Below, piece after piece: positions 1,588-22,066 of a stretch of 58,001 nt of DNA. The stretch lies in NCBI RefSeq assembly GCF_000002075.1, contig NW_004797381.1, forward strand, positions 80,620 through 138,620. The letters are read 5' to 3'. A model generated the notes under the pieces. It was not told the origin of the DNA. It searched no databases and worked only from the letters and a program-made list of their open reading frames with translations. This DNA comes from Aplysia californica. Lineage: Eukaryota. The position numbers and the translations under genes were made by a program. Numbering within the stretch: position 1 is the first letter of the stretch; each line of letters begins with the position of its first letter.

Positions 1588-2173
1588 ATGACACTCTCGT
1601 GGGCGTGGCTTGTGCTGGTGGTCGCCATAACAACGGCGTCCACCACATCACAGCTGCCCGGGGTCGAGGCCATCCACTTGTACGCGGACGAACGTGGGTT
1701 CAGAGGCGGCAACATCCCTGGCAACAACGACGTCTACTACAGCAGCAACAACAACGTAGCGGTCAGCGACCAGGCAGGCACAGACACTTGTCCTCAGAAA
1801 TGTCGGTGCGGGACAGAAGGTTTGCTACCACCGAGGCCTGGACAGGCCCCGTACCCCTTTACAGTCAACTGCACAGGGCAGGTAGGTCATTAATAATAAT
1901 AATTATTATTTCGTAACGAGCGACCACTATGAGACAGAGCAGAACAGAGGGGTAGAGGTAGGGGTGGGGTTTGGGGAAGAGTTAGGGCAATAGGTTTAGG
2001 GTAGGGCTAGGGTTAGGGTTACGTCTCTTCTTTATTGAGTTTTAGGGGTGGTCGCTCGATACGGAAAACCTTCCATAAATAGTAATAATAATAATAACAA
2101 TAGTAATAATAACAACAATAATAACAGTAATATCAATAATAGTACTAACAATAAACATAATAATAACAATAAC

Positions 2174-2218
<45 letters not shown>

Positions 2219-2939
2219 TATAAATAATAATAATGGATTGCATAATTCCATAGCGCTTTACCCCATACAAATATAAAGCTCTGAGCGGTTTACATCGATC
2301 ACGTGATTGCAGAGAGTAAAACCTCACGCAAAGAATAAACAGTTCCTTATATAACAACCACTTTTAAGGAAGAACATTACAAGGCCAGCCCTTTCTTTAC
2401 CAGTACTGTATTTCTATTCAGCTTATCATTGTTCTTTATTTTCTTCTTACTTTTGAGGTTTTTCTAGTCATACTTACGTAATACTTGACTTAATAGATGG
2501 TAATCCATACAACTTCAAGGAAAGTGTATTTCGCAAAATAAATGTATGACTTTTCTCTTGAAGTTATCACAAGCAATACACTTGTACAAAAAGAAAAATA
2601 TTTAGAAAACATTTTGAGACAGATTATGAGATGATGAATGAGATTCCAACCCCAATATATATCACCCATAGCTGCATTTATTTGATTGTTTTTCTCTCTG
2701 ACAAGGGGAAGACGCCGACGTGGTGCCCAAAGGTTAAGTGATATTTTTTCCTTGTGGAATGTCCCAGGAAATCTTCCTAAAGCGGTATCTTGTGGCAGAC
2801 TAGACAGCCATAATGTAGGACGGGTGTGGTGATTGTTAACGACTCGATCATAGCGTAAGGCGATTTCAATGGGCGTGTCAAGATAACTGCTGCCTAATTG
2901 AGAGAAAGAGGAGACAGGGAGACAGAGATAAAAGAGACA

Positions 2940-3013
<74 letters not shown>

Positions 3014-12100: not shown

Positions 12101-13126
12101 CGCGTGGCGTGCTATTTCCCCAGCGGCGGAGCGCCCATCCCTCTTCAACAGCTGCCCTTGCAGTACTTCCCTCCCACCTGTCCGCCCGTCGCCCTCGCGC
12201 TTTTCCCCGCCACCCTCAACCTCAGCCTGGGCGCAGAACTTTGGCTCGAGTGCCACGGGTTGGGGGTTCCAACCCCGTCGGTGTCCTGGATCCTGCCCGG
12301 TGGATACGAGATCAACGCCACCTCCACGCCGAAATGGCCGGATGGAAGCGGCAAAACCACGCCGGCGTCGTCAGTGCGCGTTGTTGGGGAGACACGTCTA
12401 CATATCGCGGCGTTAACGCTGGCGGACAGCGGACCTTACGGCTGCCGTGCGTCCAACGCGGTAGGGGATGACTTCAGCTCTACTGTGGTTCTAGTGCTCA
12501 ATAAACCCCTGCGTTTGGTACAGGTGGAGGTGGGTGGCGATCACATCACCGTGTCGTGGCGCGGCTCGATACCGCGCCCACAGATGTCGCAATTTCAGCT
12601 AGTCTATAGGAGCCTGCGACCATCCGCTATCGAGGCGGAAAACGCGCGGCAAGATGACGCTACCTTGAAGGACGGCGGAAAGAGCGGCGGAGAAGAGGAA
12701 GACGGCTCGGCCGAGGTGTCGGGTTACCGGGTCGTCTTCCTACACGGCTCCATACACAAATGCACCATCACGGGACTTGAACCGCGAACCACTTACGAGG
12801 TATGCTTGGTGTACCGGCGCAACCAGCCCGTGCACTGCCAGAACTACACCACGACGACGGAAATTCGCCGCGTGGCCGCGCCGGCGGGCGGTATTGTGCG
12901 CGTGTCCGGCTCACAGATCGCCGTGGGCATGGCGTGCGTTTTGGGCTTCGCTCTGCTGGTGGTGAGCGTGGCTCTTGTGCGGAAGTTGCGTCACCGGAAG
13001 GACTACCGTGACCCCCTGGCGGAGGAGGAGAAGGCAGCCATACCGCTAGAAGGACTGGCCCCAAACGCCCCCAGCACACCGCTCACCTCCTCCAGAACAG
13101 CGCTGCTCACGAATTCGCAGACGTAG
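1588..13126 (+). CDS. LRRN: Leucine-rich repeat neuronal protein (LRRN1/2/3-like); 4 coding exons, 1020 aa; signal peptide-LRRNT-LRRs-LRRCT-Ig-FN3-TM
   Basis: Exons 1588-1881, 3971-4170, 9203-9338 and 10694-13126 join in frame (phases 0,2,0) with canonical junctions (CAG|gtaggt, ttgcag|G, CAG|gtacga, cccag|C, CAA|gtgagg, ttgcag|G). There is an in-frame stop at 1561 upstream of the ATG. Motifs: hydrophobic signal peptide, CPQKCRC...VNC cap, LxxLxLxxN repeats, HNPLHCDC, Ig (LWLECHGLGVPTPSVSW...DSGPYGC), FN3 (ITVSW...LEPRTTYEVC) and TM (IAVGMACVLGFALLVVSVALV). The segment DNPRLVFLHPDAFSGLPALRHLHLHNNAL...CPP...FPATLNL matches vertebrate LRRN proteins as I recall them. Confidence 0.92.
1909..2066. 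mobile_element. Small inverted-repeat element with internal TTAGGG-like repeats
   Basis: TTTCGTAACGAGCGACCAC / GTGGTCGCTCGATACGGAA flank GTTAGGG...TTTAGGGTAGGGCTAGGGTTAGGGTTA; the element lies in a (TAA)n tract. Confidence 0.55.
2082..2233. repeat. (AAT)n microsatellite
   Basis: Seen directly. (GT/CA)n tracts also occur at 1-58, 2943-3010, 8170-8362, 13167-13437, 14250-14460 and 39175-39245, and several abut assembly gaps. Confidence 0.95.
4527..4685 (-). repeat. Short interspersed repeat (family C); copies at about 39335-39500, 42750-42908 and 43952-44050
   Basis: Shared TTTTACGGCACTTGCAACACAAT...GTCATATAAGTGCC...TAGAGGTGTTACAAGAG...CCAACCACCCAC. Confidence 0.7.
5443..5962 (-). mobile_element. 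tRNA-derived SINE with Deu/Nin-like central domain, copy 1
   Basis: Minus-strand head GGGGCTCTCGTGGCCTAGAGG...GGTTCGAATCC (A/B boxes), a pyrimidine-rich spacer and a core TTCTCGGA...GCACGTTAAAGATCCC...TAAGAGTAGG...CAAAATTCAA. There are four copies in the window. Confidence 0.8.
8752..9135 (+). repeat. About 385-bp interspersed repeat (family B), copy 1
   Basis: Further copies on - at about 24178-24570, 38042-38415 and 42343-42730; same 3' tail as the Deu/Nin-like SINE. Confidence 0.8.
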
Positions 13127-13177
13127 CAGCAGACCCGAAAGAACCATACTGTCACAGACTGCTCTTACACACACAAA

Positions 13178-13217
<40 letters not shown>

Positions 13218-14285
13218 CGTGCACACACACGCGCTCACACACACACCAGCTTTACAGACTAGCTTTTTGCGCATATTTTGGCGGAACGGTCGTTACACAA
13301 CCATACACATGAATCAACACACACACGCACACACACACACACACTCACACCTATTCACATGCACGCAAACGCACGCACGCACACACAGACACACACATTC
13401 ACACCTACAAACTCGCACCACACCTACACATAAACTANNNNNNNNNNNNNNNNNNNNNNNNNNNNNNNNNNNNNNNNNNNNNNNNNNNNNNNNNNNNNNN
13501 NNNNNNNNNNNNNNNNNNNNNNNNNNNNNNNNNNNNNNNNNNNNNNNNNNNNNNNNNNNNNNNNNNNNNNNNNNNNNCACATTAAGATCTCTTTTCGAAC
13601 CCGGAGACTAAGATTACGAATCAAAACATACTTTCAATACAGACAAACATTGACACTACTTCGATTCCCTAACCACCTTTGTTTTCAAGATACATTATTA
13701 TGTACATGTCAAGGAATATAAAGTGAGTCATACAAGATGAGTATATCTAATTATCTTTAGAGAGAGAGAGAGAGGCAGAGAGAGGGTGTGANNNNNNNNN
13801 NNNNNNNNNNNNNNNNNNNNNNNNNNNNNNNNNNNNNNNNNNNNNNNNNNNNNNNNNNNNNNNNNNNNNNNNNNNNNNNNNNNNNNNNNNNNNNNNNNNN
13901 NNNNNNNNNNNNNNNNNNNNNNNNNNNNNNNNNNNNNNNNNNNNNNNNNNNNNNNNNNNNNNNNNNNNNNNNNNNNNNNNNNNNNNNNNNNNNNNNNNNN
14001 NNNTTGTGATTTGATTGATTACTACTCCGTGTCCAATCTGGCGTACATGTATAGTGTATGAATCCATTTAGCGTTGCTGAACCGTTTCTCATGAACCATG
14101 AAAATGATTGTAAAGATACGAGCCAATAATTCGGTCGTCTACGACCATTGTATTACCGCCGTGCAATGAACGTGTGCATCTGGCGGTGCTGTGTTCCTTA
14201 ATAAAGTTATGCGTTCTTGAAGCGCACTTTTGTTCCGACCTTGACCGTTCTGTGTGCGTGTGCATGTATGTTATATTATGTGTGC

Positions 14286-14326
<41 letters not shown>

Positions 14327-14519
14327 CGTGTGTGTGCGTGCGTGTGTGTGTGGGTTTGTGTGTGTGCGCAAGTGTGCTTTTTGTGCGTGCGTGCGTGTTT
14401 GTGTGTGCGTTTGTGTTTGCGTACGTACGTACGGGCGTGCGTGCGTGTGTTTCTGTGCGCGCGGTCTTTTTTTTTTTTTTTTATCTATTCGCTCCCGTAG
14501 AGTTCTGGAAAGCCATCAA

Positions 14520-14698
14520 CACAATTTAGATCATTTAGGAGGCAGGTTTCAACCCTGTCTGTCAGGGCCAACCCGGTCTGAGAGGGATACAACATCCCAG
14601 CAGAACAGTGATTTAAAAAAATCTCCCAACACGGGAATCGAACTCCGGTCTTGCGTGAACGACGGCGAAGCGCCTTACCGCTACAACACGGACGTCGG
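14520..14698 (-). mobile_element. Short tRNA-derived SINE; copies at about 3718-3915 (+), 7455-7815 (-) and 30020-30195 (-)
   Basis: Minus-strand head CGTCCGTGTTGTAGCGGTAAGGCGCTTCGCC...GGAGTTCGATTCCCG, followed by a shared non-tRNA body. Confidence 0.7.
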
Positions 14699-14721
14699 TA
14701 TACAGGGCCTGGGAATATATA

Positions 14722-15153
14722 TGAGGCAGCGTGGTGGAATCAGGCTCTCGTCAATTTTTGGGCATGTAGAGTTATTGGTGTGATCGTAAAGCTTGTTCAC
14801 TTGTCTTTATTTCAATGACAAAAATATCTATTTATCTTGAATACAAGTCGAGATATTTGCCAATGAAGGAGGTGGGGGTCACCTGTTCTCAGAGGTAAAA
14901 TTAGTGAAAAAATGGCCACCAAAGATTAGTTGTTTCCTTAGCTTAAGAGTCCGTGGTAACTGAAAATTTACATTTTTATGCCTTTAATCAACGTTTTTAA
15001 GACAAATCCACACAGAAATGAATTCTTTAATGGGCATGAAAGGTGTTGAGCCAAAAAACAAAAATTTGATTAAAACTCACAAACCTGCGGAAAAATGCAA
15101 GCTTCTTCACTTTGATTATTTTGACGAGAGCCTGATTCCACCACGCTGCCTCA
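14722..15153. mobile_element. MITE family copy 1 (about 430 bp)
   Basis: About 33-bp TIR TGAGGCAGCGTGGTGGAATCAGGCTCTCGTCAA. Close copy at 34431-34856; diverged inverted copy at about 50200-50610. Confidence 0.85.
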
Positions 15154-15961
15154 CTAATGAACTGTACCAGTGGAGATGTAAAATGTTTACGACAAAACTG
15201 GATAAAGCCGGAGAAGATGATCTGGAACGTGCAACACCCCCTCCCCCAGCACGCGCACGCACGCACACGCACGCACGCACGCACATGCACACACACACCA
15301 CACACCTTTCCAAAGAATAAACTGAGCAAAACAAACCGCAAGTCGGCCTCTCACTTATTTATAAGACAATTCGGAATAAACAGTTGAATTTAAAATGCAG
15401 TTTCTGGGACTCTTGAACCGCCATAAAGGCCTTACTTGAAAGATTGAAAGTAGAAGGAAAACGAGGAAGTGGTAGACCAGGAGCAACTCTCCAGTAAAAC
15501 CTGAACAGGTGGATCACCGGGTACAACCAGGATTTTTAAAAATATAATTTTCTTTCTGTCAGATTGGTATTTTATTATGACGATGAGCTATGTTGTATAG
15601 GCCTGGTCTATTCACTACCTATCGATAGAAAAAAATCATATTATTATTGTTTCGTTAGAGTTTTACGGCACTCGCAAAACAATTATGACAAGTAAATGCC
15701 GAACATTAAATAAAGGTGTTGTAAGAGGAGAGGGAGACGGATGTTAGAATGGAAAGGAGGAGCAAACAACACCAGAAGTCTTTGTACACTTTATCCCTCC
15801 ATCCGGAACTTGCCTGGCCTAGTAGGCACGCTTGGCGTTTCTACATTCTTTGGGGAAGCGTACCGGTCGCCATGATGCCATGATCAAAAGACATTTTTAA
15901 CTTATGTAAAGAACGAAGGGATTGAGATTTACTTATAATGTAGAAATACCCCCCCCCCCCC

Positions 15962-15992
<31 letters not shown>

Positions 15993-18151
15993 CGACTGCC
16001 GGCATCGAAATGGCGCCAACGATACAGACCACTACAAAGAAGTCACAAGCCTGAAACCCAGTTTCCAAAAAAGTCACCACTATTTTACACTACGTGTAAT
16101 ACAAATAGGTTGTTACAAAGCCAGCGTATTTCACCAAAGAGGTAACGGTAAACTTTAAAGAAAAGAAAGTGAGGATTGTAAAGGCGATACACTGGATAAA
16201 ATATCTATATTTCCGAGTAAGTATAAACACTCCGGTGGGTTATTTCACAATCAAAAAGGTTGCATCCCATACGTTCTTATCTTATCCTCTGACTGAAATC
16301 GGTGTCCACAAAGCCGTCAAGGTTGCATCTCTTATAACACCTCCGACTAAAATAGTAAGGTTGGAACCAAACATAAAGGAAATACATTCGAGAGAAAGTA
16401 AAAGTATACCATAATAACAACATTTTTATAAAAAAGTATCAGACATTGAAAATGACTGGAAAACGGCCAAAAGCGCTCCCAATTTCGCCACTCACGCAAA
16501 GGGGGACAATCATTCATTACTCACAGGGGAATTTAAATATCAAGGCTACATCCCTTGGACTTAATTGCGTTAAAAACCGCATAGAGGCAAGTTGTCACTA
16601 AACGTACTCTGTCACCCGCAAATCAGATAATCTAATGATAAAGGTCTGAGGTATACTGTGTACAATGTACCTTCTCAAATTGAAGACAAAAATATCAAGA
16701 CATTAACTGTATTTAGGGGGATGGTTTAAATATTCGAACATGTTTACACAGAGTCAACAGTCTATAAAAAACACCCCCAGTAGGTGCATTACCAGTGTTT
16801 CATGATACTGTGAGAGGCCATCATATAAATATAAGGACTACCATCAGGCTGGCATCTTTGCTAAAAAGGCAATGAGCTCCTACACTCTAACATTAAATCT
16901 GTAAAAACATGTTTTCAGTAAAAGGGGGACACACATTACATAGATGCTGTCTTCAGAACAAAGATAATCAAGTGAAACATTTTTGTTGGCCAAATAAAAC
17001 AACCTTTCTCCCACTATGGCATGACTTGGAGATCATACTTTTGAAAAATGATTAAGAAGACAAATGAACTAGTAAGTATCACTTTCGAACATTGGACTGC
17101 AGGGTGATAAAATCGGGAACATCACTTGGACAATAACAGCAACAACAAAACACTAACTTAACAAGTAATAGTAATTATTTGGGGAGGACAACCAATGACT
17201 ATAGTTCGGTCAAAAATGCATCGAACAACTTATTGTCAAATATCTCCTTACTATCGAACACAGATTATCAAACTTTTGCGCAATGACTTAGATCTATATC
17301 AATTTGTCTTAACAGGTGAATATTTTTTCAAACTCTTGAACACTGTATTCTAGAAAATTCCTTAATAAATACCAATAAAAAATCCTGGTCAATGGTTTCT
17401 ACAGATTTTAAAAAGTTAACACCTCTGGCAATATCACTTTTAATAGTAAGTTGGTCATTTTTTTCTAATCGCAACATTATGCTCATTGAACGTATGTTTA
17501 GGAAACCTTTAGTGTAAAAAATGTGTTCACTATAAAATTAACTTCTTGTAAGAAGTTTTGCCACTAAAAAGTGTCATAGAAAGGTGAGCTGTGACGAAGG
17601 CCATACGCGTATGCAAAATGTGTGCGAGGAGCGGGAAGAGCTGTGAACAATCCCATTTTCAGAGTGATGAAGATTTAAAGTATTTTATATAAATTTAGGA
17701 AGATAAGTTTTTAATAGAGCCTCAGTGGTTGTGGAAAAATGTGATTAAGTTAAGACAATTGATACAAACTGATGTGCAAAGTATGGGTAACATTGATTCA
17801 CCCGTTAAAGAGATATTTGAGGACAAGTTGCGCCACGAATTTTTGACTGCACTATAGGCTGCCTCAGGCGTTACCCAAAGGATCGTTGATACTTGCAAGA
17901 AGCACCTTTTTTAACGTTGCGGATAGGTGCAAAGATGACAAAACAACAACCAACTACAACAACTGGCTCCATTGCCCCCTCAACCTGTCGGCCACAAACA
18001 CACACAACAAGGATAGCAACGAGAAAAAAACACATTTTTGATATTAATTAAAAATGCACCACTTTCTGTATAATGGTGCTAACTATCAGTTACACTTTCC
18101 TCTGCACAAACCAAAAATTCGTGCCAAAGAAGGTGGAAAATAATACATGCA

Positions 18152-18533
18152 CAGACATGCCAAACCCTCCATGATCAAAAACAGGGAGTTTCCCTGAGAA
18201 TCCTCCTTAAAACTCTGAGGGGAAAAAATTGGAGTCTCCAGAACCGCAGTAGAATCAGATTATGTAATGAAATAATTGTGAATTACAAATACACACAAAT
18301 AAACACAAATTAAAATGTGTATCATCATGCCATTAATGATCTGTTATGCGAATATTGCAAATTGACATTTTTTTTTCAAGTCTCTTACGACAAGTGCGTA
18401 TGACCAATGGAAATGGAATTCAAGAACAAAATTGGATTTCATGCAAATCTGATCAATCAGAGTTCTTCCATGCACAACATTTTCTTTAAAACATTGGAAG
18501 ACTCCGATTTATTTGGAGTTCTTGGCAGGTCTG
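18152..18533. mobile_element. hAT-like MITE (related copy at about 35012-35392)
   Basis: Ends CAGACATGCCAA...TTGGCAGGTCTG; shares interior (AGAATCCTCC...AGTCTCCAGAACC...CAGATTA) with the 35 kb copy. Confidence 0.5.
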
Positions 18534-18599
18534 CATGTACAACAACCACACAAATCAGAACTCAGCACAGCAAGCCCACAAATGACATGGAGTACTTAC

Positions 18600-20345
18600 A
18601 CAAGGGAAACAACTTCTCCTCTCTCAAACTGCATGCTAGAAGCCGCCCAGCGGTTCAGCAGCACAAAATCTGTGTTGTTGCCCTCCGCATTCAAGGTTGG
18701 CTGGGGACAGATGAACAAACATCAGATGCTATTTGACAGACTGACTGAAGACAGACAGACAAACATAAGCTGCAGGTTAACTGAGGACAGAAGGCAAACA
18801 TCAGTTGCTATCATACATACAGACCAATAGCTATAGATTGTTTATACCCCAACGTTCAGCTACTAATTACTTGCCTTTAAAATATTTATCCTGAGTAGGG
18901 GTTTTTTTTCTCTTGTATTTTTTAAAATGAAAGACAAACACATTTCAGCAACCTCTCCATCTTGGCAAACACAATGTTTTACCAGTATGAACAATCGCTT
19001 TTCATTTTGTGAAAATCTATGACCATGCGACCTATAGAGGAGGTAATTGGGGGGGGGGGTTAAAGCTAAAACAAGACTAGATTGTTATGATTAGGTGCTA
19101 AGAACATAGATTGACTGACAAGACTCTCCAGTACCTTAAAGCTGAGTACTCATCCCTCTATGAATAAATTGACAAAAGAAATGATTATTTTAAAGTATAA
19201 GTGTTCTTCCCAACTGACACAACAATATTAGGCCCGAGTTAAATGTATCATATTCAAGACCTAATGGTTGCAAGTCCAACGGCTTATAATACCACAAACT
19301 TTTCACTAAGCTACTGATGTCACAAAGAAACAGGAAAAAGATATCAGCTGTTTAGTGTTAGACTCCGCCACATGCCATTTTGAAAAATGACGTGCGACAC
19401 AGAGTCTTACAGTGAGCAGTCGATATAATATGCAATATGCACTGAAAGAAATAGACAGAGAATCATTTTTTTGTCACATGGTGAGGATTTTTTATTGTTG
19501 TTTTTGATGTTTTACGGCGCTCGCAACTGCATAACGTCACATGAACGTGTGGGACACATTGAGCATTTTCAGTCTGCTAGGAATTAATTTGGTTTTTGCC
19601 AGGGTGGTGGCCGAAGCTTACTATCAATTTTAGGACCACCAAGGGATCTTTATACGGGGTGCCCACTACGGATGGGATCAGCCGATCGGGGCGATCGCCC
19701 AACTCGATCGCCTCAAAAACAAACGTGTTTGTTTTCAGTTTCAGGCGATCGAGTCGGGCGATCGGCCAAATCCAGCTGTAGTGGGCACCCCGTCGTAATG
19801 TGTGAACTTGAATATGGGACCTCCGAGATCTTTTTGTTTTTACCCGAGAAGGATGGGTGTTAGATCTTACTTACCATAAGATCGGGGGTGTGGCTGGAAG
19901 TCAGTGGTAAAAAGGAGCCAAGGAGTAGCAGTAGAAAGGCAGAAGAAAAAGTCTGGAGAAAAGAGGGGGCAAGGGGAGGGGGAGGAGGGGGAGGGGCAGA
20001 AAGTGGAGACGAAAGCAGACGACAGAACAAATTTAGAGATCAGGAAAGGAGGTGAGAGGAGAAGTTTTTTGAAGAGAAGAAAATTTTCCGTCGCTGTCGG
20101 GTTTCGCAACCAGTTGAACGAGAGGCAAACACAATACCTCTAGACCAAGAGAGCCCCCATGGTGGTGGGGTCTGGCCACCTATCATAAAATACTCACATT
20201 ACAACACTGAAGACTTCATAATCACGATTACCTGCATTGATACACCATCTACAGTCCTCACTGCATAGAAAATGTCGGTGAAGGCCACATATGATGGAAC
20301 AAACATGATCGCGCCTTTGATCATGTGCTTAATCCACCTGGCCAT
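18600..20345 (-). CDS. IMMP2L: Mitochondrial inner membrane protease subunit 2, first two coding exons (gene continues beyond the left edge)
   Basis: Exon 20345-20232 encodes MARWIKHMIKGAIMFVPSYVAFTDIFYAVRTVDGVSMQ|gtaatc (phase 0). Exon 18700-18600 encodes cccag|PTLNAEGNNTDFVLLNRWAASSMQFERGEVVSL(V)|gtaagt (phase 2). The S26 peptidase catalytic-serine motif G-x-SMQP, the D-x-VLLN and RG-x-x-V motifs and the intron positions match human IMMP2L (VEGASMQ|PSLNP...RGDIVSLV|). Confidence 0.92.
19508..20158 (-). mobile_element. Deu/Nin-like SINE copy 2 (contains MITE)
   Basis: Colinear with 5443-5962 apart from the 19654-19793 insertion. Confidence 0.8.
19654..19793. mobile_element. 140-bp hairpin MITE nested in a SINE
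   Basis: ACGGGGTGCCCACTAC...GTAGTGGGCACCCCGT, with inner inverted arms CGATCGCCCAACTCGATCGCCT / AGGCGATCGAGTCGGGCGATCG. It is absent from the other SINE copies. Confidence 0.75.
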
Positions 20346-22066
20346 CTTGTACCTTTTTGTGCTTCCCAGATGATTTCAGGAAATTTTTTTTCATCTGTGG
20401 AAATTATTGCACAAGTGTAAATTTGTCGGCCAACTATATTCTCACCTGGGGAGAATAACTCATGATCTGCTATTCTCATCCCCCCCCCCCCCCCCCCCCG
20501 ACCGGACATCGACAGTGATGTACATCAATATTTCTTTATTGTAATAGTTCGGCCAGCTTCAAGCACCCTAGCCCATGAGATGGAAGGAGCACTCTTACAG
20601 AATTAAAGTCAGGATTATGGGATATATATGGAAAATTATGAAGCAGACTTTTGAAACAGATGATCATCTTAACCAGATCTTTGCTAAATAATTAAATTAA
20701 ATTAAAAAAAACCCAAAAAATAGAATAATAATAATGTTAAAACATTTTTCGCCTCTCCAGTAAAAAATATGTCTCACTACTGATGACACTGGACGGGATG
20801 TGAGACCGGCTGGACCATTCGTTGTTTACACACTTAATGATGACAGGCCTCTCTGCCTGCACACACTACATTGGTCCAAGGAACAGAGAGCGTGCATGAA
20901 CGTGTAATGAGACACAAGCACGAGACTTTTATATTATGCTCTTGCACGACGATAGAAGTAGAAGGGTAGTAAATTATTCAGACCAAATGGGCGAGGGCGT
21001 TAAATCGTGTTAACTAGTTCAATTACTAAGCAATCCAAGCTCTTTTCTTCACTTTCATTTCGTTTTCTTTTATTCTTTCTTTTTCTTTTTTTCTTGCCCC
21101 TTCTTTCCCCTTCTTCTTGAACATTGGGAGTTTGGAGTAAAAAAAAAAGAGCCAGAGAGCCAAATGAAATTCTCCGGGCCAGACGCGATCCCTCCAAACT
21201 GACAACCCTTACTGTGACTATTCCGACCACGAACACAATCCAGTGGAGCATCAGCCCCCCCCCTGGATCATTTCTGGAAACCTCAGCCCTGAACCCTCTA
21301 CGGTCATTTCCTGTAAAACGAGGGGGTGAGAATAGCGACACATGAGAACAACCACTTCCAAATTTGTCAGACCTCTCCTGCCTGTACTGTTGCGTACGTG
21401 TTCGCCGCTTGTAGCAGCAGCGTCAGCAATGATGACGACGTGTGTGTGTTTGGAAGGAGCTCCGCAGAGGGCTGGCCGACCAACAACACACAAAAGAGGG
21501 GATATTCTATGCAGGGTATAGATCTACCCTAACCCTAACCTATAGGCCTACCCTGACCCAAAATCCTAACTCTTGTAATCTGCTCAGTGGATCTTGTCAT
21601 GGTCAGTCTGAAACCCCCTCATTTATAGTTAAATTTACTATTATCAAACATAATAACTCAATCAATAACTAATAACTATTGATTTGCGGCAAAATCAAAA
21701 ATGAAGGCCATTATATTCGTGTTCAGCATGCAAAATACTACTAGAAAAATAGTATATCAAACGTGTACATGTGACGAGTGTATTAGTAAAAAAATACCGA
21801 CGATGTACACTTACATTCTAGATCTAGAAATCTAGATATCTAGATCTAGATTATACTGAACTGTAAACTGTAATAATATATACAGAATTAGTACAGTCGA
21901 TCTGCAACATTCAATCATTATCATTGAGACCAATTTGACTTTGTTGCTCAAAAATCCGTTAAAATTTGGTTAAAAATTCAAAGCCACATTCCAAATGATA
22001 AAAGGCAAGCACTAAGGAAATAAGACGTTCTGTGTGAAATTTGCATTTCGAGTCATTCTACCCTAC

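Follow-up and report, generated by a model that had tools for sequence, protein, structure and literature searches.

The gene IMMP2L encodes Imp2, a catalytic subunit of the signal peptidase in the mitochondrial inner membrane, a family S26 enzyme, and its product is functionally unrelated to the neuronal surface proteins encoded by LRRN-type genes. In the human genome (7q31.1), LRRN3 lies antisense within the 'large third intron' of IMMP2L (PMC2913944, PMC4255718, PMC3565204), and Table 1 of one survey lists the pair as kept in coelacanth and/or zebrafish (PMC3933685). Here we describe a stretch of 58,001 nucleotides from the gastropod Aplysia californica (NCBI RefSeq assembly GCF_000002075.1, contig NW_004797381.1), referred to below as the window, which corresponds to scaffold C111:80620–138620. 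It carries the 5′ end of IMMP2L on the minus strand and, on the plus strand, a gene for a leucine-rich repeat (LRR) protein of LRRN-like layout. The reading that we favour, and consider probable, is that this LRRN-like gene is an antisense guest nested in IMMP2L and that the pair descends from an early bilaterian ancestor.

Ancient microsyntenic pairs are known by the hundred. The Aplysia locus most closely resembles the vertebrate IMMP2L/LRRN3 pair, with which it shares an Imp2-type S26 host, a guest on the opposite strand, very likely in a large early intron here too, and a guest protein laid out like LRRN3 as signal peptide, LRRNT, LRRs, LRRCT, Ig, FN3 and transmembrane (TM) segment. It differs in that three introns interrupt the coding sequence of the Aplysia guest (none of them is present in the guest of another gastropod, Haliotis), in the long Ser/Asn-rich insertions of the Aplysia protein, and in that the 3′ exons of the host are missing from the Aplysia assembly. 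The locus is also like other ancient bystander–target pairs, in which a housekeeping gene has stayed for very long times beside a neural or developmental gene to which it is unrelated (Irimia et al. 2012, PMC3514665; PMC6906185), and like the LRRTM/alpha-catenin genes, where an unrelated host carries, in one of its introns and on the opposite strand, a neuronal gene for an LRR transmembrane protein. According to PMC3933685, however, the LRRTM/alpha-catenin nesting arose and was lost within vertebrate evolution, whereas the IMMP2L/LRRN pair is apparently shared with molluscs. Earlier publications cover the human nested pair and its interpretation as a regulatory block. No report of a molluscan counterpart turned up in the literature that could be searched: full-text searches returned no paper linking IMMP2L to invertebrate synteny, and the main text of the 2012 microsynteny survey (PMC3514665) does not name the pair.

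Two IMMP2L exons in the Aplysia window

The minus strand of the window carries the following IMMP2L features.

20345–20232, minus strand: IMMP2L coding exon 1, with the ATG at 20345, 38 codons (MARWIK...VDGVSMQ) and a gtaatc donor
18701–20231, minus strand: IMMP2L intron 1, 1531 bases (gtaatc...cccag; acceptor context ...tccccag)
18700–18600, minus strand: IMMP2L coding exon 2 (PTLNAEG...FERGEVVSL plus two bases, GT; phase 2), with a gtaagt donor
1–18599 and running on to the left of the window, minus strand: start of IMMP2L intron 2, open-ended, with no exon 3 or later in readable sequence

The membrane anchor is encoded by exon 1, as is all but the proline of the catalytic-serine motif SMQP, which exon 2 completes. 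The catalytic serine is therefore present in the S-M-x-P form after an N-terminal anchor, reading ...VDGVSMQ/PTLN... across the exon junction. The exon 2 translation is PTLNAEGNNTDFVLLNRWAASSMQFERGEVVSL, followed by two further bases and then gtaagt.

The exons were queried one by one rather than as a joined exon 1 and 2 model, and Pfam gave no S26 score for either, the pieces being too short. An index-free search of exon 2 alone against 1.84 billion proteins recovered a 166-residue Peptidase_S26 protein (P0060, PF10502) at 69% identity over 32 residues (E 1.3e-4). The named relatives of this protein and of P0061, a full-length protein of 186 residues that matches PF10502 at 3e-18, are mitochondrial inner membrane protease subunit 2 from insects and fission yeast. 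When P0061 was used to query the 927-Mb Aplysia genome, it matched exon 2 (E 1.3e-8), exon 1 (E 5.4e-4, corresponding to its residues 3–45) and an IMMP1L gene on scaffold C868. Because these were the only matches, the two window exons, which read as intact, are by this search the sole IMMP2L sequence in the assembly. Their similarity is Imp2-type, not Imp1-type, the Imp1-like gene of this genome being the separate one on C868, and exon 1 is conserved at the DNA level in the snails Lymnaea and Physella. At 20478–20503, about 140 bases upstream from the ATG of IMMP2L, lies a homopolymer of roughly 24 G (minus-strand reading); it may reflect a problem of assembly or sequencing, or it may be a G-tract close to the promoter.

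An LRRN-like gene on the opposite strand

The LRR gene occupies the plus strand to the left of these exons.

1588–1881, plus strand: LRRN-like coding exon 1, residues 1–98 of P0001 at 100%, with the signal peptide, the LRRNT cysteine cluster and a gtaggt donor
3971–4170, plus strand: LRRN-like coding exon 2, LRRs 1–3, with an LRR_8 match
9203–9338, plus strand: LRRN-like coding exon 3, LRRs 4–5, with an LRR_8 match
10694–13126, plus strand: LRRN-like coding exon 4 with the stop codon, encoding the other LRRs, an LRRCT with a Ser/Asn-rich insertion, Ig (I-set), FN3, TM and tail

The product, P0001, is the uncharacterized protein LOC101852916 of 1020 residues, which matches the window at 100% in four GT–AG exons; the plus-strand open reading frame at 10655–13123 is likewise 100% identical to it. 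Stretches of N at 3030–3176, 7500–7699 and 9803–10097 fall in introns 1, 2 and 3 of the gene, respectively, and those at 13438–13577 and 13792–14003 lie downstream of its stop codon. Since P0001 is collinear with its orthologues from Lymnaea, Physella, Elysia and Haliotis across every exon junction, these gaps conceal no coding exon. The Lymnaea, Physella and Haliotis loci themselves are essentially gap-free.

The protein comprises a signal peptide, a four-cysteine LRRNT, about 13 LRR cores, an LRRCT, an I-set Ig domain, an FN3 domain, a single TM segment (residues 949–975) and a tail of about 45 residues. Pfam scores LRR_8 at 3e-37, I-set at 8e-9 and fn3 at 21.8 bits, the last below its cut-off; fn3 is significant (34.8 bits) in a more distant relative, P0011. 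For LRRNT, which has a cut-off of 25.8 bits, Haliotis scores 26.7 bits and Lymnaea 24.2. The Ig–FN3–TM part is single-copy in the Aplysia genome. This layout, with Pfam domains, LRR cores, one TM and short tail, is that of LRRN1–3: Lrrn1 has been described as having 12 LRRs with flanks, an Ig domain, an FN3 domain beside the TM segment and a short cytoplasmic tail (PMC2225406). Endocytic sorting motifs of the YXX-phi and di-leucine kinds have been reported in the LRRN tail (PMC2225406). The gastropod tail, ...RKDYRDPLAEEEKAAIPLEG...SSRTALLTNSQT, is strongly conserved among gastropods and contains a tyrosine and an LL pair, neither in a clear YXX-phi or di-leucine consensus context.

Several leads point to an LRRN-like identity of the gastropod guest, namely its architecture, its position, its nearest clusters in a protein-language-model atlas and the automatic names of its orthologues. 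For the whole protein, LRRN3/LRRN1 clusters take ranks 1–6 and 8 in the atlas (0.98), before LRFN and LRIT, and for the Ig–FN3–TM part alone the nearest is an LRRN1 fragment cluster (0.93). The automatic source names are LRRN1-like in Haliotis, LRRN1 in Elysia and LRRN2 in Biomphalaria. Word-indexed homology searches with the LRR protein returned gastropod proteins and generic LRR proteins (chaoptin, Toll-like), with no vertebrate LRRN among them, and a profile search of solved structures matched generic LRR ectodomains only, a result that is uninformative on orthology.

The guest varies within gastropods in length and intron content. Low-complexity insertions rich in Ser, Asn and Thr are specific to Aplysia and make its protein 1020 residues long, compared with 693–799 in other snails. 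The longer, of about 200 residues (~11600–12200; P0001 ~480–680), sits within the loop of the LRRCT, after the CDC pair and before the final two cysteines, and the shorter (~11000–11170) lies between LRRs 8 and 9. Aplysia has three introns in the coding sequence (1882–3970, 4171–9202 and 9339–10693); Lymnaea and Elysia are without the first of these and have the later two in common with it, and in Haliotis (L022) and in an ENA contig (L053) the coding sequence is intronless. These differences suggest intron gain in heterobranchs.

Nested arrangement across gastropods

Three other gastropods, Lymnaea, Physella and Haliotis, each have the orthologous LRR gene on the opposite strand within an annotated IMMP2L-type gene. 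In Lymnaea stagnalis (L018), the LRR gene (plus strand) is enclosed by a called minus-strand gene of 176 residues (PF10502) that begins at IMMP2L exon 1 and extends beyond both the LRR gene and the locus. Physella acuta (L019) has the same nested layout, with a host of 179 residues that also runs out of the locus. In both species, IMMP2L exons 1 and 2 are found 3.7–7.6 kb past the LRR stop codon, and neither the stretch from exon 2 to the guest nor the guest's 10-kb upstream flank contains a host exon. The host of Haliotis asinina (L022; 177 residues) spans the full 22-kb locus, with no exon within 10 kb of the guest. In Elysia marginata, IMMP2L exon 2 lies 9 kb past the guest, and the annotated host is shortened to 71 residues, a failure like that in Aplysia. 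The nested arrangement is thus present across Gastropoda, in Vetigastropoda as well as Heterobranchia.

Exon 2 ends alike in Lymnaea, Physella and Elysia, as ...RGD/E-V/I-VSLM (RGDVVSLM in the first two). Because gene order, strands and spacing in Aplysia are identical to those in Lymnaea and Physella, it is very likely, by comparison with these other gastropods, that the LRR gene is nested in Aplysia itself.

Search for the remaining IMMP2L exons

A motif search by regular expression and a sensitive, low-stringency tblastn found no IMMP2L exon 3 or later in window positions 1–18599 or in the left flank, C111:1–80619; over C111:1–138620 as a whole, they picked up exons 1 and 2 alone. The 80.6-kb flank reaches to the end of the scaffold, and about 24 kb of it (~30%) consists of N, spread over 24 gaps that measure up to 4 kb, which limits what can be concluded from absent exons. 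Across the whole genome, the degenerate DNA patterns KR[IV][IV]A.EGD, H.WVEGD[NH] and W.EGD[NH] matched no IMMP2L exon; the loosest gave 25 matches, with the right context only in IMMP1L, so that the positive control was recovered. The lysine box (IKRV..EGD) and box E (WVEGDN..S.DS) of IMMP2L had no match in the readable sequence of this gap-rich assembly. A DOCK-family search for extended synteny found no DOCK gene on C111, the scaffold ending 80 kb to the left.

Two further features bear on this search.

13127–18599 (5.5 kb), no strand: interval from the LRR stop codon to IMMP2L exon 2, with N gaps at 13438–13577 and 13792–14003 and no IMMP2L exon detected
C868:260061–260920, minus strand: IMMP1L-like, Imp1-type S26 gene, with one exon carrying RGDVVFCRAPKNSSSVICKRLMGMEGD and another VWLEGDNQEASIDSRSYGQLPYGLL, the gene also reading VWLEGDNQEASIDSRSYG

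The counterpart of the 5.5-kb interval contains no IMMP2L exon in Physella (L019, 15692–19381, gap-free) or in Lymnaea (near gap-free). The C868 gene was considered as the rest of IMMP2L and rejected, as it reads Imp1-type (ICKRLMGMEGD, VWLEGDNQEASIDSR). It is the sole match of a genome-wide Pfam S26 search, and besides it and IMMP2L no signal peptidase of the mitochondrial type was found in the assembly.

These results bear on a sequence-only reading of the window that preceded this work. It had placed two IMMP2L coding exons on the minus strand, the second ending ...RGEVVSL in phase 2, and a whole LRRN gene on the plus strand between 18600 and position 1. Splice sites (including the gtaagt donor at 18600) and S26 matches bear out the former, and the latter is complete, in four exons. 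Calling the gene an LRRN accords with its architecture, atlas neighbours and source names, the leads that point to a putative orthology to LRRN1–3. As for nesting in IMMP2L, both genes, their strands and their order stand as described, the 3′ side in Aplysia being expected by comparison with Lymnaea, Physella and Haliotis, and the intron concerned follows an exon ending RGE/D-V/I-VSL here as in Lymnaea, Physella and Elysia. No recognisable IMMP2L exon had been seen from 18600 down to position 1, and none came from the regular-expression and tblastn searches; the C-terminal IMMP2L matches that it expected on the minus strand to the left of the window did not appear in the readable letters of the 80.6 kb to the scaffold end. 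Exons hidden in the gaps at 13438–14003, which that reading had named as a way for it to be wrong, are unlikely in view of the snail comparison.

Age and maintenance of the arrangement

On the reading that we favour, the missing 3′ IMMP2L exons of Aplysia would lie to the left of the LRR gene, within N gaps or past the scaffold end, and the position of vertebrate LRRN3, antisense in the corresponding IMMP2L intron, would go back to the same early bilaterian ancestor. Molluscs and vertebrates would have preserved the arrangement, and insects, with their compact IMMP2L, would have lost it; flies have no known LRRN-type gene. Retention is likely to be passive, in that most rearrangements carrying the guest off would break an essential host and splitting the two would take two breaks within one intron; any neural-gene enhancers spread through the large intron would add regulatory entanglement of the bystander–target kind.

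The nested pair is probably far older than vertebrates but not universal among animals. The Lrrn1–3 cluster has been described as having no fly or worm member (PMC2235866). A candidate starfish orthologue (P0044) was rejected, as it lies outside any S26 gene and aligns only over generic LRRs and Ig; it is silent on echinoderms. The sequence-only reading was correct that human LRRN3 is antisense within a large IMMP2L intron, in agreement with the three papers cited at the outset. Its term 'pan-bilaterian' is too strong, because the insect loci, from a beetle and two fruit flies, have neither the nested gene nor the intron. Its dating of the nesting to before the protostome–deuterostome split draws support from the match between gastropods and vertebrates, with the same restriction that the insects are without the arrangement.

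Several points weigh against an inherited nested LRRN gene. In the beetle and the two fruit flies, IMMP2L spans 556–592 bp with no guest gene, and its single intron is at a different position, in keeping with an Lrrn1–3 cluster that is without fly or worm members. The arrangement is known in two clades, gastropods and vertebrates, and gastropods are the sole invertebrates sampled that have it. The correspondence of introns assumes that the human third intron is the one after the exon ending RGDIVSLV. Protein searches across the genome found no IMMP2L exon from the third onward, and the case for nesting in Aplysia is hence indirect. In the guest itself, fn3 scores 20–22 bits in Aplysia, Lymnaea and Haliotis, below the Pfam cut-off, and always between Ig and TM; the Physella orthologue is named 'let-4-like', a sign that automatic names are unreliable. 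Furthermore, repeated and convergent nesting is known for LRR genes (PMC3565204).

The alternative that survives best concerns how the pair is held together. In a strict genomic regulatory block, the IMMP2L intron would be filled with arrays of conserved non-coding enhancers that serve the LRRN-like gene and keep the two genes from separating, which we regard as conceivable but doubtful. Vertebrate analyses of such blocks cast LRRN3 as the target and IMMP2L as the bystander (PMC6906185), and the introns are large, the Haliotis host having no exon over the more than 22 kb that surround the LRR gene. However, blastn of window 1–24000 against the Lymnaea, Physella, Elysia and Haliotis loci returned coding exons only. 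No conserved non-coding DNA was seen among these snail loci, in a test that is weak because it took in 10-kb flanks only and deeply diverged species; in this respect, the locus differs from known bystander–target pairs. Moreover, passive protection by an essential host accounts for retention without enhancers. A palindromic simple repeat (tctaga/atctag) at 21811–21855 has several matches in the Physella locus, but it is low-complexity sequence and not a conserved element. Rfam gave no family match in window 1–24000.

A second alternative, which we consider improbable, is that an LRR–Ig–FN3 gene entered the large IMMP2L intron separately in gastropods and in vertebrates. A large intron offers a wide target, and nesting is frequent among compact LRR genes, as with LRRN1 in SUMF1, the LRRTMs in alpha-catenins and the LRTMs in CACNA2D, all convergent cases in other hosts (PMC3565204). 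The insects are without the arrangement, the assignment of the guest to LRRN1–3 is putative, and the comparison runs directly from gastropods to vertebrates. Nevertheless, two independent insertions would have had to arrive at apparently the same intron as well as the same host, strand relation and family-like architecture. The arrangement is also stable from Vetigastropoda to Heterobranchia, and the Haliotis guest has an intronless coding sequence, both of which count against separate entry. Because host, strand relation and protein layout are the same, a pair ancestral to bilaterians and lost in insects fits the data better than convergence.

Least likely, and by our estimate very improbable, is that the two genes are mere tail-to-exon-2 neighbours in Aplysia, with the rest of IMMP2L elsewhere through mis-assembly, rearrangement or truncation of the gene: the lack of any 3′ exon on C111 or elsewhere would fit, in an assembly as gap-rich as its left flank attests, but exons 1 and 2 are intact and the only IMMP2L-type exons in the genome, order and spacing are identical in Lymnaea and Physella, where the annotated host extends across the LRR gene, and a downstream exon is demanded by the phase-2 donor at 18600.

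Implications

If the nested pair is ancestral, it would provide a positional anchor for naming the molluscan gene an LRRN orthologue and, given that no fly or worm member of Lrrn1–3 has been described (PMC2235866), would shift the origin of the LRRN family back to early bilaterians. It would also imply that LRRN3, not LRRN1 or LRRN2, retains the ancestral genomic home in vertebrates, and it would add a very old entry, specific in both orientation and intron, to the conserved nested and microsyntenic pairs.

The farthest-reaching version can be put forward only tentatively: a single pair from the protostome–deuterostome ancestor, kept by interleaved enhancers in one and the same intron and orientation for more than half a billion years, with Aplysia as an identified-neuron model for host/guest interplay at the human Tourette/autism locus at 7q31. 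In connection with Tourette syndrome and autism, the question of whether host and guest transcription affect one another has been raised for human IMMP2L/LRRN3 (PMC3565204). Provided that the arrangement is ancestral, Aplysia would offer a neurobiological system in which the mutual transcriptional influence of host and guest may be studied.

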